A stretch of 64,000 bases of DNA from contig NW_003314353.1 in the NCBI RefSeq assembly GCF_000143415.4, positions 50,075 to 114,074 of the forward strand, given 5' to 3'. Below are positions 1 to 64,000 of the stretch, piece by piece (positions within the stretch are counted from its first letter, which is position 1; every line of letters starts with the position of its first letter). Source of the stretch: Selaginella moellendorffii (Eukaryota; Plantae; Lycopodiophyta). Made by a program: the position numbers and the translations under genes. The notes beneath the pieces were generated by a model, which was not told the DNA's origin, ran no database searches, and saw nothing but the letters and a program-made list of their open reading frames with translations.

Positions 1-2794
1 GGCCAAGGATCCATAGCAACTGAGACTGGGTGTCCCCATCTCATTCACCACGTCCTTGGTGCCTTTTGCACCAAAGTGTTCAAGTTAGATATGCCGAACT
101 TTCACTCTAAGCAATCTAACCGTGCATCATGACTCCGAGGCATCCCTCACTTGGCGGTGTGCCCAAATCAATCTCCCCACTGAGAGTCCATGACCACCGA
201 AATATGAGTGTCCTCATATTCCAAACCATCACCACGCCCTAGTGAGTTGGGACTCGAACCCAAGCACTAGAGGGTCGGGACTCGAACCCAACCTCCGTAT
301 ATGCATCTACAGACGGCATCACATAGGATGCCTGGCGTGACTCCCCACGCCGGTGCACCAACTTATATTTAAAGCGCGCTATAGATCACAGCTTAGGAAC
401 CTAGTTCCTCCGCACTGCCAAGTCCTCTCACTTGACATGTCTATGATCACGCATGGACTCCTCCATGCTCAGCCCCCTAGGCCAACCCTTTGAAGTTGGC
501 TCCTTCCACTAGGGTATTCGTTCCCCCCGACTTGCCAATCTCACTTAGCAAGTCATTCGGCCACCGTAACATGGTTCATGCATAAGCGTGAAAGTCCTTA
601 ACCATCGACTTTCGTTCAAAGCCTTCTCTTTGAACACTCGGGAACTACTTCCCCAATCTTGATAGCCTCACCTCATGGCAAGCTTCAAGACGACGCTCCT
701 GCTGCGCCACTCTGATTTCGCGCATTCTATGAACCATTTACACTTGGCTGACTAGGTACTTATCTACCTAGGGGAACGTTCAAGGAACTCTGTTCCTTGG
801 CTTACTAAGCCCTCTCCTTTCGCAAGCTTTTCAATTACCATATAGTCTAACATGGACAATCCCATGCTTTAGACTCTCCATGGCATCCCAGTCGCTAGTA
901 ACAACATGCTTGAGCACCCACTTGATTCTCCACTCCCAACTTGCATAACCACCTGTCAATTCCTATGGTTCAGTTCTATCCCTTTACTACTTGCCTTTTG
1001 GCCTCATATGTTTTCTTCGGTCATTCTCCTCCAGACTAAGAAGATAGCTTTGCACTTTCTACCATGCTTTGGCAAGTATTCATAGGGATGAACTTACCCG
1101 ACAACCTAGGAGTGGTTCCTCAATCCGGGTTTGCTCACCTTGTAATCCCATACCCTAGGATTACCATTGCTACTTATGGGCCTTTATATGCCCATCCCTA
1201 GCCTTGCCAAAATCCCCTTTGGGCTTTGTCCAATTGCGGTAGACGGACTTCTCTCGTCTCCGCAACCTTGGACATTTGGATAGCACTTCCTATCCATCAT
1301 TTGCTAGGGACTTTATCCCTTGGGCATTATCCATTGCCCTCACGACACCAAACACCACCTTCTGGTGTTCTAGAGTGTTTGGGTGTTCTAATGATGGTTT
1401 CTCTGACAATGAGCATTCCCTTTTCAACATTGACTTACTATATCGCAACATAAACAATTTATCCCCCATAAGGGTATATCCAACTTCTTTATCCCCATAA
1501 GAAGTCTTAGGTAGTTGCCTTCTACCAGTTTAACGAATTATTTTGCACCTTTTACTTAGTTGTCTCATAGTTGTCAAGTCCTACAACTCATTGCTAGTGC
1601 TTCCACACCTCCATCATTATCTAGGTCATCACACTCTAACCACATGCCTTTCAGCTTAGGCTATGCCATTCCTATTTCCATTGGGATTCCTTTGGAAGGG
1701 GTTCTCATAAACCTGCCAACTTGACCTCAAGGCAGCACGCCTTGGCATATTCAGTGTTTCCACACTATTGGCTCCAGGATCCTACCTTTATGACACTTCT
1801 TACTTGTGTCTAGGTCTTTTGCCAAGACCAATATGGTTGTCTCTGATGCCAATTATCCACTAGCACTGCACTATAGAGTTCACGCACAACTTTGTGTCAA
1901 AGTTGTTTTCTTCCGGGAAACTCTTTCCCACAACTTTAGCATGGCACCTTCTGCTATCAATGAGATACACATTGTTCTCATGCTTGGATCTCAAGATCCT
2001 CCCCATCTTTCATGGGGCACCACACACCTCAGTCCAAATGCTTCCATCAATCCCTTAGGATTATTCTTTGACTCTATTAGAGTTATCAAACTTTTTGGAC
2101 TTTGCTAATCCAACGACCCATGAGGTTCTACTTTTGAGGTGCTAGCTCACTTGAATACAATTCCTTGTATTCATGTCCTACTCACAAGGACCATCTTTGC
2201 AAGTGTTACTCCGACACTTGATTTGTTCTCTAGGGGCAACCTCTCACCCCTTATGACCACTTGTCCATGTGATGAAAATACCAACTCATCCTCTAAATAC
2301 ACCCCTAACTCCTTGGGTTGTTCCAGCATTTATTAGAGGTAGCCCCGGCTACCATTTCAAGGACTTGTGTCCTCTTCCGTATTTGACCTCCCACGGTCAT
2401 CAATTCCAATCCCAAATTTATGAGCACTTGCCTCAACTATGTGAGGATAATCTTATGACTCCTTTATTGTTTTGGAGTCTCTATCTTTCTTGTGATCCCA
2501 ACTATAGTTATTTACCACAACTACCTTAGTCAATTTGATAAATCAAATGCTCATCCGGATCACATCCTCAACTCAATGAGGAAAACATTGCACTGTTCCC
2601 AAGATCCCAAAGTCGTTCCATTATTGGCCTTTTTCTATCCACCACCTCGTTTACAAATTCACACGTGAACTGTAATGGAGAGCCATGTCTTCCCGACTTG
2701 CTACTCCGCAAGGATAGGCCCACTCCTCAGACCTTTCGATGCCAACACAAGTGATGATATACTTGAGCACCAATAAAAGTCGGACTAAGGAACA
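1..2794 (-). mobile_element. Degenerate internal region of an LTR retrotransposon (probably Ty3/Gypsy), continuing beyond the window start
   Basis: Lies directly downstream of an LTR end and PBS on the minus strand. No long ORF. The minus strand near 560-620 reads MVKDFHAYA*T then, after a frameshift, CYG, resembling the integrase zinc-finger region. Confidence 0.55.
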
Positions 2795-2806
2795 GTTCCG
2801 ATACCA
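2795..2806 (-). promoter_or_regulatory. Primer binding site (tRNA-iMet-like)
   Basis: Minus strand TGGTATCGGAAC starts 3 nt after the LTR end ...CTTACA; canonical PBS is TGGTATCAGAGC. Confidence 0.75.
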
Positions 2807-2809
2807 AGT

Positions 2810-5076
2810 TGTAAGTGACTAATTTTTCCATTCTACTTTAGTCACTTAACCACACCTCCGACCACTTGGAGGAGTCTCACTCACAACCTCCATAGGTCCT
2901 ATTTTGGACTTAGGGACTTGCTAACCCCCAAGAATGGCATTCATGCCACTTAACCATTGCACTTGGTCCAAGTGCTCCACGTGTCCGATCCCATGATCAA
3001 CACCCCAAAGTACCACCACATATCAGTTTGTTACGCTAAGGCCATGCCCATTCACCTTGGTCACATTGGTGGTTTGACACCACCTACATTACAGTCCCGT
3101 CTCTCAAAGACTGGGCCATCCATCCATGAGTGATCATCCCAGATCCACTCCTTAGCATCCTTAGGATGCCTACAAACCTGGGGAATAGCCTTCCCCCATA
3201 TCCCTTTTCCGGTCCCCACCAAGTCCCTTTCTGCCCTTGGCCGTGTTCGCCAACACTGCCACTAGATCAAGGCCCATAGGCTTGACCACTAAGTCCCATG
3301 GTCCTTTGGGACTTCCTCACTACCCGACTGCATCCTTGGTCACTACACTAGAGGACTACTCCTCTTCATTTCCACAGTCTGGGACTTCGGGGCAACATTT
3401 CGGAACACCGTGGCCTTACGCAAGCCTCGTGGGTAATCTCCCCACCTTCCGCCTTTAGGTGCTCTAGCCATGGGCTTAGAGCGAGGTTCCGTTGAGCCAC
3501 ACCAGGTATCCAAGTAGGTAGTGCCACTCACACTTGGACTGGGAGCATCGGCCAGTCGATCTCCCGGGGGAACTAGAGCCGGCTCTTGAACACTTCACCA
3601 AGCTACCCCGCTTATCGGTCCATATTCACTGTAGTCTTGGACTTCCCGGTGGTCAGTTCATCACCCAACACTGGGTCTGGCCTTCCTGGGCCAAACTGGC
3701 CTTTCCTGACTAAACTGGCTCCACTGTAGTCCTCCCCCTTATTATACTTTTGGAGCTCACCAAACCCCCCAGGGTCTAGGAGACAAATGCTTTGGGCTTT
3801 CACCCTCTCAGACTCGAAGTCGGACTCGGACTCGGACTCGGACTCGGACTCGGACTCGGCCTCGGTCTCGGTCCCGATCTCAGTCTCGGTCTCGGTCCCG
3901 GTCTCGGTCTCGGTCTCGACCTTGGACTCCATCTCGGGTCCTTCTCGGACTCCATCTCGGATTCCATCTCGGGTCCATCTCGGACTCCGTCTCAGTCCAC
4001 CTCGGACTCTATCTCGGACTCCATCTTGGTCCATCTCGGACTCCATCTCGGACTCCGTCTCGGTCCATATCGGACTCCGTCTCAAACTCCATCTCGGACT
4101 CTGTCTCGGTCCAGCTCGGACTCCATCTCGGACTCCATCTCAGACTCCGTCTCGGTCCACCTCGGACTCCATCTCGGACTCCATCTCAGACTCCATATCG
4201 GACTCCGTCTTGGTCCATCTCGGAGTCCATCTCGGACACTTCCATGTGTCATGTGTTAGTCCTTTTTGGGTCCCTTTTTGGAGCCTTGCTTATTGGTTGC
4301 CTCGTGCTCGCTCCTCGAGCACTTTGTTGGGAGTTCCACTCCCACTCTCGACCTTCGAAGTCGGAGCTTTTAGTCCAAACGTGTTACGCTTGTTTGGCTT
4401 TCGCTTCGGCCACTACCACGTGGCGCCCTTCCGGCTCCACTTTGGGGCCTAGGGATTTTGTGTCTCACATAAGGCCACAGTGTTCCGAAATGTTGCCCCA
4501 AAGTCCCAAACTGTGGAAAGGAAGAGGAGCCATCCTATAGTGTAGAGATCAAGGATACAGTCATGTGAGGAGGAAGTCCCAGAGGACTGTGGTATTTAGT
4601 GGTCGGGCCTGTGAGCCTTGATCCAGTGGCAGTGTTGGCGAACACAGCCAAGGACAGAAAGGGACTTAGTGGGGACCAGAAAGGGGATATTGGGGAAGGT
4701 TATTCCCCATGTCCATGGGCATCCTAAGGATGTAAAAGAGTGGATATAAGGTGATCACTCATGGATGGATGGCCCAGTCTTTGAGAGACGGGACTGTGAT
4801 GTAGGTGGTTTTAGACCACCGATGTGACCAAGGTGAATGGGCATGGCCTTAGCGTAACGGGCTAATATGTTGGTGGTACCTTGGGGTGTTAATCATGGGA
4901 TCAGACACGTGGAGCACTTGGACCAAGTGCAAAGGTTGAGTGGCGGAGATGCCATTCTTGGGGCTAGCAAGCCTAAGTTCAAAACAGGACTTATGGAGGT
5001 TGTGAGTGAGACTCCTCCAAGTGGTCGAAGGTGTGGTTAAGTGACTAAAGTAAAATAGAAAAATTAGTCACTTACA
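2810..5076 (-). mobile_element. 5' LTR (2267 bp) with ~600-bp terminal inverted arms
   Basis: TGTAAG...CTTACA termini; 2810-3418 is the reverse complement (with scattered mismatches) of 4470-5076; PBS abuts the left end. Confidence 0.75.
3810..4240. repeat. Tandem repeat of (TCGGAC)n hexamers and GGACTCCATCTC-type units in the LTR centre
   Basis: Directly visible; explains the SD/ES/GL low-complexity ORFs at 3612-4452. Confidence 0.9.
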
Positions 5077-7839: not shown

Positions 7840-8760
7840 ACAAATGAGAAATTGCTCCGCGCTCGTCTCTCCATCTTTCTTCGGCATGGAAGCTTCGAAG
7901 AAGCCTTTTGCCTCGTGCAAGAGCATCACTCGCGCGACCTGGAATCGAATCAGGGACGTGCTAAACAAGCTCTTTTCTTTCGCCATTTGCCCGTTTATGG
8001 CATACCCGTGAATTGTGACGCTTCGAGTGATGGTCTTATCGAACAGCTCTTGAACATATGTTGCCATGAGGGTGCTCCTTGTCGGCATCTTGTAGCGGCA
8101 TAGAATAAAAAATTTGTTTAGCCATTTTCAGATGCCCGGCCTTGGGTTCCACATCACTATATCCTTGCTGCTGGCTTTGTTGGGTTAAGCTCCTTGAAGC
8201 GCTATATGCTTCAATCATCACTTTCCAGGAGATGTCATCATGTCGCGGTGCGGCAAATCCATCAAAGACTTGTTGGGCTTGATCTGTTCTGCATAAGATT
8301 TGAGCATTGTGGTGGGGGAGACAAGATTAACTTCAGTCATGCGATGGAAGATTTGGTCTGTGCTGTGAGAATCCCCAGATCGGGCGTATGTTGACAGGAG
8401 ACAATATCAGAGTTCGTCCATATTGTCACTGTGTGTATAGGCAGCGAGCATTGCGTTCCAGGTGATGAGATCACGTTCCTCCATTGAATGAAAACCTAGC
8501 TTGGCTTTCTCCAAATGCCCAGAACAAGCAAGTGCAGTAAGAATTGTGGTAGAAGAAATGAGTTTTCATTCTGGGATTGATTCATAAAGTGACTGTGCCT
8601 TGAGAAGAGCGTTGTTTGTGATATAACCAGCTATCATTGCATAAGTTGTTTTGATGGATATTGAACAAGAGCTGTTCTGCTTCATGGAGATGACCATTTG
8701 TGGCAAATGCTTACAATATCATCACCCAGGAGAAGCAGTCCTTGGTGACAATTCTGCAAA
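7840..8760 (-). pseudogene. Decayed PPR gene relic
   Basis: Minus strand FHSMEERDLITWNAMLAAY and AGHLKMAKQIFYSMP motifs, with stops and frameshifts. Confidence 0.7.
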
Positions 8761-10170
8761 AAATTTGGTAAGAATGAATCTGGTTAGATCATTATAAATA
8801 ACACCAACCAAAAGAAATTTTGCTTCCTTTAAGTCAAATGTGGTTCACATTCAGTTGCAATTCTTTTATGATTGATTTTGATAGTTAAGTGAAAGATGGT
8901 TGTTTTATATTAGAAAAAACTATATTAATAAAATTATTTTCCAGAGTCTTTTCAGATTTTTTAGGTTTACAGTTTTTATAAAACAATTTGAACAAAAAAT
9001 TATATCAAATTTTAATTTTTAAAATGATAAATTAAAATAAGTGTTCAAAATTTTTTTTAGGAAAAACATTATGATACATATGCATAATTGAACTGAAAAA
9101 ATGATTTTACTCTTTAATTTTTTAAGTAATTTTTTATCCAATTGGATAATTTTACATTTTAATCCTTTACAATATCAAATAAAATAATAATTCATTTATT
9201 TAATTATTATTTAGTTGTAGTTTAGAGTTTGTATAACATGAATATATAACTTTGGAAGCATTTAAAGTCCAAGTGCTAATTTAGAAATAAAAAAATTATT
9301 TTAAAATTGTTCTTTTTTTAATATATTGCAACAATTTTACTTTATAATCTCCAAATGTAAATAAACTTTAATTTTTATTTAATGTTTTTATAGTATTTTT
9401 ATAATATAAATATATAATTTTGTAAACCCAAACACTAATTTAGAAGGAAAAACATGGTTTTAAACTTACAATTGTAAAATGTTTTAACTATATTTTTTTT
9501 CATAAATTTTTTGCATTTGAAGTTTCTAATTAAACTAACATTTTTTGTAAATTGAATTTATAGGTAAGAAATGTCAATTTAACCATTTTATTTATTTTAG
9601 TTGATCAAAATAAATAATAAACCTTAAGACATTATAATACAATTTGGCCAAGCATGAAAAGTATCCATGGATAATGCAGGCAGTGATTGTTCCTAATCCT
9701 CTCTTTTTTCTTTCACATGTGATCCATTCCAGTTCGCATTTCTATTTTTGTAATGATCCTAAATAAGGGAGAGGTATGTGCGATCAGTGCATGCACATCC
9801 ATGACCGGATCAAATAGATCGTCTCATCAACATGTATGGTTGGTCCCAGGCCTCCTCCTGCAGCTCTTGGTTTGACATCCTTTGCAGGAAAAGATATGGA
9901 CGCGATTGCCATTGATTTTGATGGACACAAGAAGGGAATCAGTCGAATCGTGCAGACCATGAGCCGTGACCATGTTTTGGCGATATTCCAGGAAATACAG
10001 ATTGAGCAATGACTACTGCAGGCAATCCCAGCATGCCATCTGAGAAATGCAGCTCCAGGGATCGCTTTAGAGACTTCTTGATTCAATGTAGCTTGCGGAC
10101 GTCCATATATCAACCTTCCATATCATTGAGATCAACGTGAAGCCCGTGTAACGAGCTATGGAGAAATCTT

Positions 10171-11888: not shown

Positions 11889-11950
11889 GGGCATTTGGTC
11901 TAGTGGTATGATTCTCGCTTTGAGGTCGTGAGTTCGCGTCTCCCAATGCC
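11889..11950 (+). pseudogene. tRNA-Pro pseudogene
   Basis: GGGCATTTGGTCTAGTGGTATGATTCTCGCTTTG-AGGTCGTGAGTTCG...AATGCC; 3' strand of the anticodon stem deleted. Confidence 0.8.
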
Positions 11951-12065
11951 ATCTTCCTTTAAGTTGATCGTTGTTCCAAATCAGGTTCAGATTAAGAAAG
12001 TTCAGAAATGCGTAATTGATTATTGAATTTTACAATCAGAAAGGAAACAAACAAGAGAAAAACTG

Positions 12066-13100
12066 TTACGCTTGCACTGCCCGTGACGATGAAACGGCAC
12101 ACTTCCGGGTGGAGCTTGGATCTGTGAACGAGGCCTTCTTTCCGTCCGGGTCGAGCATCATCGGCCCCGAAAACCTCTCGTTCTTCCTGGGAGCGTTGCT
12201 GGATCCTCCTCCTCCTGCTTCTGTAGAGATCGAGAAAGCCCTCGAGGTAGTAGCAGTAGCAGCCGTGGCGGAGCTGCGCGGATATGGTGGAAGAATGCCG
12301 TCGGCTACGTGGGATTCCGGGACGACCTGGCCGTTTCTCACGTTGAAAGAGCCGTGCCTCCTTGACTGGTCATCAAGTTCTCGTAGTATGACTGGTAGAT
12401 GGAGCGCATCATCGAGCGCGGAATGCAAGCCTCGAGAGTGCTCCTCGGAAGATAACTTGAAAGATCACAGAGCTGGTTCAGGAATATCAGCTTTGCTACG
12501 AGGCCGTCCCTGAAAGGAGTACAAAACAAAACAGTGAGATTGCCAGAGGAACAAAGAAGAAAAACCTGGCTCCATCAGACGACAAATCCAATGCGGTCAC
12601 CACAATGCCTTGCAGGAATGTTTTCATCATCGCCTTGATTGACATCTCGATATAATATTTACTATATATATAGTGGTTTAATTCTGGGTTTGGAGTGCTG
12701 TTGCTCCACAGACTATGGAGAATAAAACACCAAGGCAAAAGATAATGCAGATATGGTGATAGGACTCTTTTTTCTTTCTTTCAAATTTGCAGGAGTCGAA
12801 ATGAACCGTGTAACAAACAACCAGATTTGTAGAGTTTATGTTTTGTAAATGATGTACAGCTGAACATTAATTATGAGAAAAGCTATAAGAATGAAAAACA
12901 AGACTGGATCTTTATAGGGGTATTGTCAGCACCCGCGGCAATGCAACACCCCTTGATAGACCTTGGTGTCAATCCTCTGCCATATCGCTGTTAACTCACA
13001 GGTAAAAAACGTAGCCATCCTTCCTCCAAAGTACCAACACCTTTAGAGGTGGCTTTGGGAGAAGCTCTGTTTTGTGCTTGATAGTAAAGCCGATCATCGT
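12066..13100 (-). pseudogene. NAP1: 3' fragment of NCK-associated protein 1 (SCAR/WAVE subunit)
   Basis: EMSIKAMMKTFLQ...R | DGLVAKLIFLNQLCDLSSYLPRSTLEACIPRSMMRSIYQSYY matches the plant NAP1 C-terminus (HLVAKLIFLDQLCEISPYLPRSSLE). Intron 12510-12565, frameshift near 12370, 5' portion absent. The extent beyond ~12740 is tentative. Confidence 0.75.
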
Positions 13101-13806: not shown

Positions 13807-14398
13807 ATGGTGATGACGATCATCAGTGGCAGGGCCAGGCGAGGAGCGAGGATGCAGCAAAGTCTCCTCGCCTGGTTGGTTCAGGGGATCATGATGAACT
13901 TACTCCTCTCTGCAGCTTCTGCCAGGTCGCTACTCCTGCAACAGCATCATCACCGGGATCAAGGTAAGCTGAGATATCACAGAGAGAAAGAGTGCAGGAG
14001 AAATGCTCACACCTCGACAGCTCGTTTCAAATCTTCCAGAGTCGTCATTAAAGGCGAGGTTTTGCTTTCCCCTCACTCGTCTCGGCTTCTTAAAGAGGTA
14101 AGAGCTGGCACGAACAATTCATTTCTCGCCGCATCTGATCGCATGGTTTTGGACACAGAGAGTTGTTTCGGATGGGCTGAAAGCAGCGGCAACAACTGCG
14201 GCAGAAGCACAAACGCAACGAGTCAGAACTCCGCTGCCAGAAAAGATATCTTCGAGATCTCAAAAACAGGAGATCGATTTCAAGAGCTACACGCTGCATG
14301 ACAATCGCCACCACCACCAAAAGCCGAGAGAGAGCGAGGACTACACCTTTCATGTAGACTACGCCGGACCCAAGCGACATCCTCCCCACAGTCATTGA
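13807..14398 (+). CDS. RGF/GOLVEN/CLEL sulfotyrosine peptide precursor (exons 13807-13963, 14021-14097, 14159-14398)
   Basis: Two GT-AG introns give an open 157-aa frame with a hydrophobic leader (LLAWLVQGIMMNLLLSAASA) and a terminal 13-mer DYAGPKRHPPHSH*; TATA-like element near 13670. Confidence 0.85.
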
Positions 14399-14874: not shown

Positions 14875-16522
<1,648 letters not shown>

Positions 16523-16657: not shown

Positions 16658-18939
16658 TCAGTATGTTTTTCTTCCATCCCCCTCCGTGATGATATCTTTG
16701 AACGAAGAACCACCAGGAATCATCGGTAAGACGTGCTCCTGAGAGAAAAAAAGAAGGAAACTCTTTGAGCTATGGTCGATCGATCGACTGATAAGCACAA
16801 ACCTGATGAGGAACAATCACGTCTAAAAGGTATGGCCCGGGAGTGTCAAGCATTTTCTGGATTGCTGCTTTGAGATTGGAGCGCTTTGTTACTCGAGCAC
16901 AGGGAATCTAGCAAAGAGAAAGCTTTTAGAAAACGTACGGGAACAATTCAGCAAACCTTGCATCCCTCGGCGAACTTCAGGAAGTCGGGAAAGATCTCGT
17001 CCTCGTGGTCAGGATCTCCAAGATAAGTGTGAGCCCTGTTTGCCTGGAGAAAGCACGGAGGTTAGAAAACGCTACTTAGTCTACCCGAAAGATTAAACCT
17101 TGTAGAATCTATCCTCCCATTGTACAACCATTCCCAAGTGCTGGTTGTTTAACACCATGATTTTCACGGGGAGTTTTTCCACGTGAATCGTCGCTAGCTC
17201 CTGAAATTACGAGAGGAGTATGTGAAATGAAAACGTTAAAGCTCGCACCGACCTGGACATTCATGAGAAAACTTCCATCTCCATCGATGTCAATCACAGG
17301 AACGTCAGGGAAAGTCGCTGCAGCTCCAATCGCAGAAGGTAATCCAAAACCCATGGCTCCCAATCCTATAGAGAAAAGTTGTGACACTCCGAAAAAAACA
17401 AGAGAGAAACAAACCTCCTGAAGTAAGCCATCTCCGAGGCTTGTCATACTTGAACCATTGCGCCGCCCACATTTGATGCTGGCCAACCCCCGTAGAGATT
17501 ATAGCATTTCCTTGGGTGATCTCGCACAGAGTTTGTATAGCGTGCTGAGGAGCAATGCAGTCGTCTCCAAACTCCACGTACTTCAATGGCCACTTGAGTT
17601 TCTGCTCCTCAAGCTCCGCTATCCAGCTTCCAACATCGGGTTTTACTTTCTGCTCCCTCAGCAGCAAGTTCAAGCTTTGAAGCGCTGGCTTTACATCGGC
17701 ACACAGCGAGACGTGAGGCTGCTTGTTCTTCCCAATCTCGGCCGGATCAATGTCTATATGAACAATGCTGGCCCTGCTAGCGAACGCTTCCAGCTTGCCT
17801 GTTACTCGGTCGTCAAACCTCACCCCGAAAGCCAGAAGTAAGTCTGCTCCATCCACAGCGTAGTTTGCATAAACAGTCCCGTGCATTCCCAGCATATGCA
17901 GCGACCGCGAATCCGACTGTGGAAAAATCCCCAGTCCCATCAGCGTCATCGTGATCGGGATCCCCGTGAGCTTCACAAACTCTCGGACTTCTTCGCTAGC
18001 GTTCATGCAACCTCCACCACAGTACACCACCGGCCTCTTCGAGTTTGCAATCAGTCTCACGATCTGCTGGAGCTGCGCCACCTCCGGGAACCGAGGCAGC
18101 CTCTGCATGTAAGCGTTGAGCTTGATCGGCTGCGACCAATTCGGTATCGCAAACTGCTGCTGGACGTCCTTTGGAATGTCGACGAGAACCGGCCCCGGCC
18201 TTCCGGAGGAAGCCAAGAAAAAAGCCTCCTCGATCACCCGGGGTATGTCCTCCACGTTCATCACCAGATAGTTGTGCTTCGTGATGGATCGAGTGACTTC
18301 CACGATCGGAGTCTCCTGGAAAGCGTCGGTGCCGATCATCCTTCTCGGCACTTGTCCCGTGATCGCCACCATTGGAACACTGTCAAGCGCAGCGTCGGCC
18401 AGGCCGGTGACAAGATTGGTCGCTCCAGGCCCCGACGTTGCTATGCAAACTCCAACTTTCCCGGAAGCTTTTGCATAGCCCTCGGCAGCAAACACTTCGC
18501 CTTGCTCGTGGCGGCAGAGAACGTTCCTGATGCACGTAGAGCGAGTGAGAGCTTGATGGATTTCCATGGAAGCGCCGCCTGGATACGCGAAGACTATGTC
18601 CACGCCCTGCCTTTCCAGAGCCTCTACCAAGATGTCGGCCCCCTTTCTTGGCTCAGAATCGCCATAGCGCGACTGGAACAAGCTCGCTGGCGGCGATGCT
18701 TCGCTTTGCTTCCGAAATATCGTGCTTGAGCCTTGCGATTCCTTGACAATCACTCTCGGCTCCTCAAACGGCTCTATCCCAGCCCGGATTCTACCCCTGC
18801 TGCTGGAAATGCCTCTCCGAATTGGAGAAATGAGCTCCGCCAACGAAAGATTCTCCTCCGATCTTCGTGAATTCAATCCCGTGCTTCTGCGACATACCTG
18901 CATTGCAATCGCGCCTCCCGCAATGCCGGTGGCCGCCAT
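16658..18939 (-). CDS. ALS: Acetolactate synthase catalytic subunit (5 introns in the 3' part)
   Basis: [68 protein letters not shown]...EGDGRKTY*. Confidence 0.97.
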
Positions 18940-43862: not shown

Positions 43863-45652
43863 ATAAATTCCCCACTTGTGTTGCACCAAGAGTTTGGAAA
43901 ACAACTTGAATGCAAAACTAATGTTTAATTGTAGCATATGTGATTTTCACCCTTTATTTTATGGTGATTTACCATAAGATAACTATAGAGTGGAATCTTA
44001 AACTTTAGATACATGGGCCAAGGCAATAGAGTGAAACTCAAGTTCAAGGCCTTGGGCCATTAAATGAAAAGATAAAGTTAAATTATCAACCATATAACTA
44101 AAGTGTGAAGGAATTGATGCACAAAATGACTTTTGAGCATTTAGCCCAAGAGTGAAGGGATAAGAGCATAGAGCAATATTAGAATAATCTTAGAGCATCA
44201 AACATATAACTAAGGAGTAAAGAAATTAATGCACAGAACAACTTTAATGCTAACACACAAAACAAAGCTAAACAAAACTTGGCATAATTTTAACATACCG
44301 ATGGTTTAACGCAAGGATATAGGTATTTCAATAATTAGTATGGTATAAATGATGGTTAGTTAGATGATATGATTTTTCATTTTAAGTCTAGTATTGAGTT
44401 GAGTGTTTTTTATTCTCCTTGTACTAATCTGGATGCTGAGTATATGCATAAAGTTCAAAATCTTGATTTTATTTCATTTATAAATTCTTTGATTAATTTT
44501 AATATTGAGTATTCCCATGTTCTAAGGGTTGTATACCGTTTTGTTAGAGTTTCAAGTTGAGTGCATATCCTCAATTGTGAGTGCCATTAAGAGCCTTTAC
44601 TTTACTGTTACTACTAAAGAATTTATGTTTTCCTTTGAAAATGTGAATGTTTTAATTAATTTTCCTGTTTTAAGTGTGAGTTATGTATTGAAGAAGTTAA
44701 GTGGTGTGAATTTTTTACTTATGTTATGATGGCCAAAGTATTTTATGATAGGAAGTCTATTGTTTTCCAAGCTTTAAATACATGTCCTTTTTTTTATTTC
44801 CTTATTTCCACATTAACAACTGCTGAAAATTCCTCTTCCAATACTTCTTTATCTCTTAGTTTTTCTTAATTTCTCATTTGTTTCCTGACACTTCAAACTT
44901 TTTTTTTCAAAGGTAGAAAGGGTTCAACCTCAACAATGGAGTGAGGATGAGCAAATATGATAGTGAAGTGAGGATGAACAATATAAATTGTGGAGTGAGG
45001 ATGAGTGTAGTGAATCTAAATGAAATATCCAATCTTAATGTAGTGAGGCTGAATGAATATAATAATAGAGTGAAGTTGAACATAGATGGCAAAATGAGGA
45101 TGAATGTAACAAGTTCAAACAAAGTTAATGCTTCAAAACTTTTTTTTTTCAAGGAGAGGATAAAAAGGATGTAAATAATAAATGGAGTGAATCTGACTTT
45201 TTATATATAGTGCTAAACAAGGGCGAAGGTCATGAGTTTGAATTAATATGGGTCTCGAATGTTGATCAAATGGAAGATGCAAAGCTAAATTCTACTTATG
45301 GTTGTGAGTTCGAGTTAATGGTGGTCTTAGAAGATTACAAATTTAAAGGTAGTATATATCATTCACTACAATTGCATTTTATGGATTATAATGGCTCTTG
45401 AAGTTCCTTACTTTAGTTCAAAGTTATGGTTTTGAAGTTAGTTTAAGCATTTGGCAACTATATATAGAGTTACAACTAATTCATTAAGATTTTATAGTTG
45501 ATTAATGTTTATGCCATGGCTTTAGATTTTGTGTTAGTCATAGTTATCAGTAACTACATTAGTGGTTTTGTGGGATTTTCAAGTTTTAATAGCAATTTAT
45601 AATCACTTAACAGAAGCTCTAAATGTTCCACTTAATCATTATCATCTTTTCG

Positions 45653-45742
45653 TCTTTCGGAAAAGAGAATAGTGTAAAATCTATAAATATATGTATATAT
45701 TTATTTATTTATAGATTTTACACTATTCTCTTTTCCGAAAGA
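45653..45742. repeat. Perfect 37-bp inverted repeat with 16-nt spacer
   Basis: 45653-45689 is the reverse complement of 45706-45742. Confidence 0.9.
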
Positions 45743-45749
45743 GAATAGT

Positions 45750-46191
<442 letters not shown>

Positions 46192-59898: not shown

Positions 59899-60341
59899 CT
59901 AACTGTAGCGGCTGCAAATGACGAAGTTTCCATGGCCGTTGCTTATGTACGAATTGCGGTCCAGTCGGCTTACCATCTGCGCCTCTCGTGTCACAGGGAG
60001 CCTTTAGATTAGAACCAACAAGAGTGATGTTGCTGCAAGAGACTCGAAAACCACCTTCTCTACCATAAGCCAGGCTTCCTCTGAGATTTGTGAGTGTGTT
60101 TGTTATCGAGCAGTGTCCGTGCTGGGGTATCTCCAGAGCAGTCGGCTTCGAGAATGTCGGTATCGAGAAAGTATTTGGGGTTCTTGCAGCTGTAGAAGAA
60201 GGCACCGCAGCACAACTGATTGAATGACAAACAAAAGAACGATCACAAAGGTATTTCTTCAGACTCTTCAAGTGTTTCTGTACATACGCTTTGATGGACT
60301 TGTGAAAGGAGGAAGAGCAGTAGCATTGCTATGAGCCCCAT
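59899..60341 (-). pseudogene. Cyanovirin-N homologue (CVNH), secreted, two frameshifts
   Basis: Signal peptide MGLIAMLLLFLLSQ, 72-nt GT-AG intron, then GAFFYSCKN..ILEADC..LD/ITNTLTNLRGSLAYGREGGFRVSCSNITLVGSNLKAPC../LDRNSYISNGHGNF: two CVN half-repeats. Confidence 0.75.
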
Positions 60342-60879
60342 TTGATGCGAAAACTTGAGAAATAAAGCTTCATATTTTACTAGGAATGACGAGAGTTTTG
60401 GTTCTTTTAGCATCTTGGGTAATGTTTTCAATCCTTCTAGTGGTTGCAAATGAAGCTATAATCACTAATTATTCTGGGAGTGACATAAATCTTCACTGTC
60501 AGTTAGGAAACAAGAATTAGAAAAAAGTAACCCTCAAGGATAAAGAAAATTTGACAGTAAAATGTAGCACATTATTTTGGTTATGATGCATTTCAGAATG
60601 TGTCATATATAAGTGAACAGACAGCATATTCGTACACGATTATGGAGTAATATTTTGGCACGTTAATTGTGACATAGGATATCCTTGCATGCAATATGGG
60701 TTAAGAACAACATATTGGGTGTAACAATGTGTTTAATAATATAATAAGATGTTTTTCTTTCAGATTATTGAAATACTTTTATTTACACAAAATGATAGAT
60801 GGTAAAACTTTTATTGATTTTTATTTTTATTACAGAAAAAATGAATTCTTATTTTAATAAGAAATCCATAAGTTCAAAT

Positions 60880-61045
60880 CAATAGAAGTATGATGAAGAT
60901 TTAATGTTTTTGAAAGACAATTAGTTTTCAAAATGGATTCTTCAAGAGTTGAATCTTAACATGTGTAACGCACCCATTAAATTGTGAAAAAACACCAATA
61001 GCTTCAATGTCCCATTAGTATTTGTAAAATATATATTTAAATATA
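60880..61045 (-). pseudogene. Highly decayed CVNH-like relic
   Basis: LNIYFTNTNGTL...STLEESILKTNC; paralogous to 61940-62140. Confidence 0.45.
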
Positions 61046-61939
61046 AAATCACTTTATTTAAAAATCATTTTGTAAAATATTAGCTTCAATTAATTTCAAA
61101 TTTGAGCAGTGATATAGTAATATATAACACTAAACAAAAATAAATAATTAACAAGAAAATATAAAAAATTAAATTAAATTATCAATTTGATTAAAATCTT
61201 CAATTAATATTATAAAAAAATTCCATATGATAAGAATATAGGCTATGATATTCATAATTAAAGATTTGAGAGTGACTGAAGCTTTTAATAGGATAATTTA
61301 ATATTAGTTTCATATTCTATATGGTGGTATTATTGTATCTTTATTTAGATGTTTATATGGTATTTTAAATGCCACATTTTGTTTTTCTTAAGCAAACCTA
61401 CTTGAAGATTCTAGGATATTCTATCAGTTATTCATTTAGATTAATCTTGAACAAGTTAATATGCAATAAGATTAATCTTGTATTTAAACTCTATGTTGCC
61501 CAGAAGAAGAATCACCATTGCTGGAGCTTCCAAATCTCACAACCTTGCTATCGCCATGGAATTTGGAAAGAACCAGCTGGAACTTTAAGTAAAACTTGCT
61601 GCTGTCATTTCAAAAACATTTATGATTTTCCCAGCAACAGCAATCAAGCCTGCTACTTCGTCTACAACTATGGGCCTAGGCATCAAAAGTGGTGTTTGCT
61701 TTCTGGATATATAACAAAAAGAACAAGAAAAGGCATGCTTCATTTGGGAAATAAATTTCTGGGATATTGACATTCTAACTGGGTATTGGTGGTCTCTTTT
61801 TGTCTAATGAAACAAGATAAGTTTTATGTATGGTTTAATCATTAACAACAATAGTTTGGAGCTGCAAAAAAAGAAAATGAGGCAAGAGTTGCAACTATAG
61901 CTTATAGTGCAAGCTTATAAAAACAAGAATGATAAGTCG

Positions 61940-62140
61940 CTACTCTTTATTTTGATAAGTCAATAGTAGTGTAATATGAAGATAAAAGGTTTTTGAAGCA
62001 CAATTGGTTTTTAAAATTGATTCTTCAAGAGTTTTACACTTACATGAACGTATAAAATAACCATTATCATCTGAGTTCACTTTAATATCTTCAATGTTCC
62101 CATTTACATTTGCTAAAATGTAGGCTAAATTTAATTCCAC
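61940..62140 (-). pseudogene. Decayed CVNH-like relic
   Basis: ELNLAYILANVNGNIE...GYFIRSCKCKTLEESILKTNC fits the CVN pattern LDLNxxIxNxNG..GxFxxSC..L....L.A.C. Confidence 0.55.
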
Positions 62141-62707
62141 TTCATTTGGAAGTTTTCTTTAAGGTTTTTACCTTCAAGCAAAATAAATTTTGGACAATTA
62201 TATAGCACACTAAAATTGAAAAGGAATTAACAAAGAAAAACCTAAAATATTAGCTTATACTATTAATATCTTTAAATTCTTGAATGAAGGTTATTAAAAA
62301 GTTCAATGTGATAAGAATGTAAGATGCTTTCATAATCTTGATATAAATATTCAATTAAAACTTTGAAAGAAGCTTTGAAGTACTACATTAGCTAGGGTAT
62401 ATCCATTACTCCTAGTCTTTTACTACAAGTTTATTGTCTTATATTAATCTAATATTTGAATGTAATTTTAAAATATTTAGATGTCCTCTAAGAATATTCA
62501 AAGTATATTTTAAAAGTCATCTGTAAATAGTCATGTTTGGCCCTCTCAATAAGGTATGGTGGCACTTTGGCAAGATAAGTAGTTCCTAGCAAGATCAGTT
62601 TATGACCTTGTGTCCACTCTACTATCTGGGGGTTTAGTGAATATCCACACATGTTCTTATAAATCAAAATATTCAGTTTAAAGCCTTATGAATATTTACG
62701 CCTAACT

Positions 62708-63388
62708 TATAGCACATATGAATTTAGAGCTAAATTCTAAACAAGTTGCACTATAAAATGAGATTTGGTACACACTCAAAACCCCTTACGAGCAATAGTT
62801 CCCTATATCCAACTTCTACATGCAAAATAATGTCAAACAGTGTTTAACACAATTTTGGCATACCAGTGGTCTAATGCAAGGAGTTGGGTACCCCATCAAC
62901 TAGAGCAATATAGAACTTGAGCTTAGGCCCAAGAAAGATGCAAAACAAGGAATGATATAACCTAGTAAAAGTTAAATTAATATCTTAATTACATGACTAT
63001 ACTTCCAACCACTATCCCTACAATACATTTAAACCCCCATATAACCCCTCATTCCTCTATATAAAAGCATGTTTTGGGCTTTCACCCCAATCCTAGGAGT
63101 TAGTCTCTAGGATAAGCTTGAACACTTATTAAATATGGAACTGTGCTAGATTATGAATTGGGACATAAGAACAACACAATAGGGTTCAAGACATCTATGC
63201 CTCACTAGCAGATTATAGCACTTACCATAAATAGCATATAGGACTGAAATATAACTAATATATAGGTGTCTTGCAAATACAATAAACTATAATATAGTAA
63301 TTTTAAGGGATTAGACTTAATGCAGAAGGGTTTTATCATTAGTTAATGCAAAACATAATGAGATAGAAACTACTTATTGGGTTAAATA
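62708..63388 (-). mobile_element. Strongly decayed LTR fragment of the same chromovirus family
   Basis: Colinear with 30249-30940 and with the reverse complement of ~42610-43335; heavy C>T/G>A drift. Confidence 0.75.
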
Positions 63389-63389
63389 T

Positions 63390-63587
63390 TATAAGTATCC
63401 AAAGAGAACAACTTGAATAATGATCCATTGAAAGGTAAAGGGTCCATGAATAAAAGTGCACCCTTTTTTTCCAATTAGTTAGGGGTTTTGGGGTAATTAG
63501 GGTTAAGTGTCTTTGGGTTTAAATAGTATTGAGCTGAGTGATCTCCCAAGAAGTCTAAATTCAAAAGTTTACATTTGGTATTAGGAG
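63390..63587 (+). mobile_element. 5S-promoter (Cassandra-like) LTR 63390-63573 followed by a PBS-like site
   Basis: GGTTAAGTGTCTTTGGGTTTAAATAGTATTGAGCTGAGTGATCTCCCAAGAAGTC; ends TTTACA, then TT and TGGTATTAGGAG. Confidence 0.7.
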
Positions 63588-64000
63588 GGGTCTTATGTTC
63601 AACTTTGTTAGTTAGTGTAAGCCACAAATTTTTTCTTTCCAATTTGCTAGCTTACCTCGTCTATCCATCCAACACTGCCTTGACTTTTGCTAAGTTCCCT
63701 CGCCAAGGTTCCCTCCTATGGTACCAGCTCCTACTTGGTCTTACTTGGTTTCAACTACTCACTACATAAGCAACGGAGTGTTAGCCATCCATCCACGGAT
63801 TCCCAAATCTCTCCCAATCCCCCTCCCCGGGTTAGACTAGACTTAAGGTTCGGCTACACTCCCCGCAAGCACAAGCAGCCAAGCACACCAAGCCTTCAGG
63901 TTTCTAACACCCCTTAGTACCACAAGACTTGATCATGGGACCCTCTAAATCCCAAGTCTTGGGTGCAACACTTGCTTCGGGATGCCAGGGCGAAACACCG

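Follow-up and report, generated by a model that had tools for sequence, protein, structure and literature searches.

A three-exon gene of Selaginella moellendorffii that very probably encodes an RGF/GOLVEN/CLEL prepropeptide of lycophyte Group H

Introduction

The characteristic residues of the RGF/GLV/CLEL peptides are Asp1, a sulfated Tyr2, Pro10 and Asn13, and Pro5, His8 and Pro9 are highly conserved. In lycophyte Group H the defining features are His8, His as the last residue and a precursor with the peptide region at its very end (both from Furumizu & Sawa 2021, PMC8329595).

Arabidopsis RGF1/GLV11/CLEL8 (DYSNPGHHPPRHN) consists of a signal peptide, a variable region and a C-terminal 13-mer that ends in HN, and its function has been demonstrated (root meristem, RGI receptors, PLETHORA). 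MpRGF of Marchantia polymorpha (DYAEPDTHPPESN) is a Group H RGF of a non-seed plant, for which experimental data have been published (PMC8329595); its peptide ends in SN, as is typical of liverworts. RGF signalling works in this rootless plant, which indicates that it is not tied to roots (PMC8329595).

Selaginella moellendorffii has three RGI orthologues, and the RxGG motif, the reader of the sulfated DY, is conserved in the RGI orthologues of land plants; a phylogeny of TPST was given in the same study (PMC8462819). For S. moellendorffii, Furumizu & Sawa 2021 (PMC8329595) and Zhang et al. 2021 (PMC8708909) list an identical set of five JGI v1.0 models, which represent three loci (404292/438132, 407655 and 412527/441866). 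A 2026 survey (PMC13503966) counts six RGF genes and five DY motifs in this species, which exceeds the three listed motifs.

Here we describe a further locus, found in a stretch of 64,000 nucleotides of S. moellendorffii DNA (the window).

Results

Structure of the gene

Translated exon by exon, 13807-14398 on the forward strand encodes, across three exons, a precursor of 157 aa (Table 1). Codon 53 is split between exons 1 and 2 (g/ct) and specifies Ala. The first-pass annotation of this DNA had proposed that splicing of the two introns would produce a signal-peptide-like precursor ending in DYAGPKRHPPHSH. Both the GT-AG sites and the exon translations agreed with this proposal.

Table 1. Features of the locus and its neighbors, in window coordinates
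Feature	Position	Strand	Remarks
Possible TATA box TATATAA	13670-13676	+	137 nt upstream of ATG; inference from sequence reading
Exon 1	13807-13963	+	Start codon, residues 1-52, first base of codon 53
Signal-peptide-like N-terminus	13807-13923	+	Residues 1-39; Kyte-Doolittle profile and -3/-1 rule
Intron 1	13964-14020	+	57 nt, GT-AG; 5' GTAAGC, 3' ACAG
Exon 2	14021-14097	+	Last two bases of codon 53, residues 54-78 (25 residues)
Intron 2	14098-14158	+	61 nt, GT-AG; 5' GTAAGA, 3' ACAG
Exon 3	14159-14398	+	Residues 79-157 (79 residues) and stop; variable region, His-rich stretch, C-terminal peptide
EDYTFHV, acidic pre-peptide block with second DY	14336-14356	+	Exon 3 translation
Predicted mature 13-mer DYAGPKRHPPHSH (RGF Group H)	14357-14395	+	TGA directly after, 14396-14398
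Possible polyadenylation signal AATAAA	14561-14566	+	About 165 nt past stop; inference from sequence reading
Ornithine carbamoyltransferase (OTC)	14875-16522	-	Downstream of the RGF gene
Acetolactate synthase	16658-18939	-	Downstream of the RGF gene, past OTC

The exon that carries the peptide had been noted as missing from the ORF track. The frame of exon 3 was open from 14102 to 14395 and contained no ATG, GTG or TTG, which accounts for its absence from the ORF list. A TAA in this frame (14099-14101) lies inside intron 2. It had also been predicted that retention of intron 2 would end the protein at 14301, without the motif. The unspliced reading frame indeed stopped at 14301, as a 164-aa ORF in the list. 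The second DY, reported six residues upstream of the first (EDYTFHVDY), was present at 14336-14362. All sequence-level statements of the first-pass annotation were therefore confirmed.

Intron 1 is in frame and stop-free, and its retention keeps the RGF peptide in frame. This means that only the removal of intron 2 is needed for the RGF motif to be read. A transcript that retained intron 1 would gain 19 residues in the variable region and would still have the RGF peptide at its end.

Identity with a RefSeq model and an allelic copy

The precursor was identical, residue for residue, to the 157-aa RefSeq protein XP_024518454.1 (LOC112341851, 'uncharacterized protein'), a predicted (XP_) model. 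The exon translations matched it at 100% over residues 1-52, 54-78 and 79-157, with the split-codon Ala as residue 53, and both introns were absent from it. The splice model of the first-pass annotation is therefore exactly that of RefSeq, and both introns agree with an independent gene model. The description of the gene as hidden was true only of the prokaryote-style ORF track, since LOC112341851 already annotates the model. The guess at a probable lycophyte was borne out by the source, S. moellendorffii.

The scaffold that bears the gene is GL377657.1 (GCA_000143415.2), and a 20.6-kb locus from it matches window positions 3807-24398 exactly. A word-index protein search was performed with the open frame 14102-14395 as the query and with candidates limited to 54-171 aa. 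It produced a single cluster, the members of which were XP_024518454.1 and XP_024516468.1; within this size range there was no kin besides the locus and its allele.

The second member, XP_024516468.1 (LOC112341129, 158 aa), lies on GL377642.1 and is 97% identical to the first. It adjoins the same OTC and acetolactate-synthase genes, and we therefore interpreted it as the other haplotype of a two-haplotype assembly. Across the 592-nt gene there are six differing positions between the alleles, and exon 3 has a single in-frame insertion of 3 nt. Three amino acids change (M3T, S19T and S41L), all within or beside the signal peptide. No difference affects exon 2, either pair of splice sites or the last 40 residues, and both copies are intact, with splice sites and frame kept. 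The allelic divergence is too small for measuring selection.

Features of the precursor

The N-terminus has an Arg-rich n-region, its hydrophobic core spans roughly residues 19-38, and the likely cleavage is at residue 39 (ASA/RS). This call is heuristic, being based on hydropathy and the -3/-1 rule only. Met16 provides an alternative start codon in exon 1. At the end of exon 2, SRLLKE is a candidate S1P-type RxLx site; its apparent counterpart in S. willdenowii, located by eye, is SLLQN.

Assignment to the RGF family

DYAGPKRHPPHSH occupies the last 13 codons before the TGA and starts with Asp-Tyr. It carries P5, H8, P9 and P10, so that D1, Y2, P5, H8, P9 and P10 are all shared with Arabidopsis RGF1. 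The two precursors also have the same layout of signal peptide, variable region and C-terminal 13-mer. On the other hand, the peptide ends in SH instead of HN, and outside the peptide there was no detectable similarity to RGF1. The likeness to MpRGF lies in DYA-x-P-x-x-HPP, and the difference again in the SH ending.

Position 13 is His, and the peptide thus departs from the Asn13 rule of the Arabidopsis RGFs. In lycophyte Group H, however, His13 has been documented as the rule, and it therefore speaks against an angiosperm-type identity and not against membership in the family. With H8, H13 and an immediate stop, DYAGPKRHPPHSH has all the features that define Group H. The first-pass annotation had called the SH end unusual. 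This view was not upheld, because a terminal His after His8 defines the group. HPPHSH occurs 16 times in the sequence table of PMC8329595, and such endings are common in Lycopodium (PMC8329595).

The Pfam family GLV1-2 (PF21529) aligned with XP_024518454.1 over profile positions 27-66 of 69, with 15.5 bits and an E value of 0.035, below the gathering threshold of 28.1 bits. Exon 3 by itself gave 14.2 bits. This sub-threshold match was the sole Pfam match for XP_024518454.1; the scan of the three exon translations, XP_024518454.1 and XP_024516468.1 otherwise gave chance-level matches to PelD_GGDEF and GCN5L1.

The exact 13-mer has already been listed in Group H from the transcriptomes of three congeners, S. 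apoda (LGDQ-2004949), S. willdenowii (KJYC-2010066) and S. selaginoides (KUXM-2028032), and the near-identical DYSGPKRHPPQSH, which differs at two positions, from S. kraussiana (ZFGK-2028643) (Furumizu & Sawa 2021, PMC8329595, Data Sheet 2). The peptide is thus not new. The first-pass identification of the gene as one for an RGF/GLV/CLEL precursor stood, with the signal-peptide-like start, D1/Y2/P5/H8/P9/P10 and the match of the C-terminal 13-mer to published Selaginella RGFs in its favor. The threefold presence of the identical 13-mer in the sequence table of PMC8329595 is the decisive evidence for the family. Since the entries in Data Sheet 2 are assembled transcripts, these orthologues are expressed.

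The 1KP transcripts were compared by eye, as given in the PMC8329595 table. In all four (S. apoda, S. selaginoides, S. willdenowii and S. kraussiana) the stop follows the peptide directly, as it does in the window. The last 39 residues of S. apoda LGDQ-2004949 differ from those of the window gene at 3 positions by eye, and the variable middle region has strongly diverged in these Group H transcripts. They are partial, whereas the window shows the full gene with its introns.

The Group H paralogue of S. moellendorffii, 412527/441866, has H8, HPP, His13, a signal peptide and a length of ~150 aa in common with the window gene, and its pro-region, acidic-x-L-F-H-I-DY, is similar. Its peptide DYTPAAIHPPRSH differs at positions 3-7 and 11 and is followed by GHNP, that is, by four extra residues past the 13-mer. 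This paralogue was in the JGI v1.0 annotation and is therefore in the published lists, unlike the window locus.

Taken together, we consider it highly likely that LOC112341851 of S. moellendorffii is a three-exon gene for a 157-aa RGF/GOLVEN/CLEL prepropeptide of lycophyte Group H.

Conservation upstream of the 13-mer

S. moellendorffii, S. apoda and S. selaginoides share an unchanged block of 20 residues, EDYTFHVDYAGPKRHPPHSH. Within the genus, the lineage of S. selaginoides is sister to all others. Counted by eye, 14 of the 20 codons differed between S. moellendorffii and S. selaginoides, all synonymously. This purely synonymous divergence shows that both the pro-region and the peptide are under strong constraint. 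Of the seven codons before the 13-mer (EDYTFHV), five differed, again all synonymously by eye.

Both S. apoda and S. selaginoides had EDYTFHV unaltered, S. willdenowii and S. kraussiana differed from it, and the upstream DY was conserved in three of the five congeneric orthologues. The strict conservation of these seven residues, including the second DY, goes slightly beyond the literature consulted.

Alternative readings

The open frame might have arisen by chance, or the model might be mis-predicted and unexpressed, with an RGF-like end that has no function. The word-index search, which returned only the locus and its allele among proteins of 54-171 aa, would fit such an origin. The pattern DY-x5/6-HPP-x2/4-stop, on the other hand, occurred at one site across the six frames of the window and at none in 300 equally long random windows generated by a first-order Markov model. 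Expressed orthologues from four or more further Selaginella species have the same tail, and across the peptide their divergence is synonymous only. Two intact alleles and an independent gene predictor that yielded the same model also argue against a chance frame, and we regard it as very improbable. Equally improbable is that the peptide belongs to another DY-sulfated family (PSY or CIF/TWS1) and signals via PSYR or GSO instead of RGI. All these families are Pro-rich with a sulfated DY at the start, and CIFs and RGFs are sometimes hard to distinguish (PMC8462819). Yet the peptide has 13 residues, compared with about 18-21 for PSY and CIF (PMC8462819, Table 1), and H8-P9-P10 with a terminal His or Asn at the C-terminus are features of RGFs. 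The sole Pfam match, though sub-threshold, was to GLV1-2, and specialists have already classed the identical peptide as an RGF of Group H (PMC8329595).

A different question is where the mature RGF begins. The ligand could be the 19-mer DYTFHVDYAGPKRHPPHSH, which starts at the upstream DY and would have both Tyr residues sulfated, with the 13-mer absent or a co-product. The invariance of EDYTFHVDYAGPKRHPPHSH in the three species and its synonymous-only codon divergence from S. selaginoides (14/20) are in line with this, and so is the acidic context of the upstream Tyr (SEDY). TPST prefers such an acidic context around Tyr. However, S. willdenowii (EAFVFHMDY...) keeps the 13-mer and has no DY upstream, and S. 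kraussiana (ESMFHVDYSGPKRHPPQSH; ESMFHVDY) keeps it almost unchanged, also with no upstream DY. In the paralogues and Lycopodium the corresponding stretch is acidic-x-(L/F)-F/L-H-x-DY and lacks the upstream Tyr, and the known RGFs are 13-mers fitted to RGI receptors. The absence of that Tyr from the paralogues and Lycopodium suggested that the conserved feature is an acidic/FHxDY pro-region and not a second sulfation site. On the simplest reading of the sequences, EDYTFHV would be a conserved acidic/FHxDY context for Tyr sulfation and for the cut before Asp. We therefore prefer the 13-mer as the mature peptide and consider it unlikely that the 19-mer is the ligand; that EDYTFHVDYAGPKRHPPHSH yields a 19-residue, doubly Tyr-sulfated RGF in part of the genus is similarly doubtful. 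If it were true, it would be a ligand form undescribed for the RGF family, and one that might have a different receptor footprint.

Predicted maturation and perception

The function of RGF1 has been demonstrated in Arabidopsis; that of the window gene can be proposed by analogy with it. The N-terminal signal peptide would direct co-translational entry into the ER and the secretory pathway and would be cleaved near ASA/RS (residue 39). In the Golgi, TPST would sulfate Tyr2 of the DY, helped by the acidic ESED patch upstream. Subtilases would then process the propeptide, possibly at the candidate S1P-type SRLLKE site and subsequently before the Asp of the DY. One Pro of HPP may be hydroxylated. 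With the stop codon directly behind the 13-mer, trimming at the C-terminus would be unnecessary. As in Arabidopsis, the free 13-mer would be expected to bind an RGI-type LRR receptor kinase, of which S. moellendorffii has three.

Position in the published lists

The window locus was missing from both S. moellendorffii RGF lists (PMC8329595, PMC8708909), which were built on the older JGI models. DYAGPKRHPPHSH was not found in the supplements of Ghorbani 2015 or Zhang 2021. A search of article full texts, exclusive of supplements, returned no mention of the peptide, the LOC number or the XP accession. The six genes counted in the 2026 survey (PMC13503966) may already include the window gene.

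Gene model, family and exact peptide had all been recorded before, and the novelty left is only the missing family name. With five models at three loci, the S. moellendorffii RGF lists derived from the JGI gene models of 2011 are incomplete, and LOC112341851 and its allele LOC112341129 merit the name RGF-like, Group H. The significance is small, in that a minor annotation gap is filled and no discovery is made. The addition is useful for counting the peptide-hormone genes of early vascular plants and for choosing peptides for studies of lycophyte roots and rhizophores.

S. apoda (LGDQ-2043199) and S. lepidophylla (ABIJ-2006934) have yet another type of Group H peptide, DYAKVKTHPPHSH / DYAKVRTHPPHSH, whose precursor contains a long His run (PMC8329595, Data Sheet 2). 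The published lists give no counterpart of it for S. moellendorffii, and it may be another gene missed by JGI v1.0.

Genomic neighborhood

The coordinates of the neighboring genes were obtained by adding 3806 to the positions in the GL377657.1 locus. In the window, the acetolactate synthase gene is convergent to the RGF gene, with OTC in between. Beyond it are MEX1-like, HMG-box, F-box/LRR and GH3 genes. The S. willdenowii scaffold KJYC-2010066 contains the N-terminus of acetolactate synthase on the strand opposite the RGF ORF (PMC8329595, Data Sheet 2). Possibly the RGF/acetolactate-synthase neighborhood is kept throughout the genus; alternatively, overlapping transcripts may have been merged in the 1KP scaffold.

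The gene caller placed a 170-aa gene with no Pfam matches upstream of the RGF gene (11946-12513, forward strand). At the allelic locus it instead placed a 171-aa gene on the reverse strand (2029-3017 in the coordinates of that locus), which overlaps the RGF start by 17 nt. The disagreement between the two calls makes the upstream gene model doubtful. An antisense ORF at 14090-14395 was rejected as a mirror of exon 3 that lacked support.

A scan of the window for bacterial promoters and terminators gave chance-level counts, and these bacterial models are irrelevant to a plant gene. AT-rich stretches were seen at 8001-10000, 44001-46000 and 60001-64000, with a GC content of 0.27-0.34 against a background of about 0.47. 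These are probably repeats or remnants of transposons.
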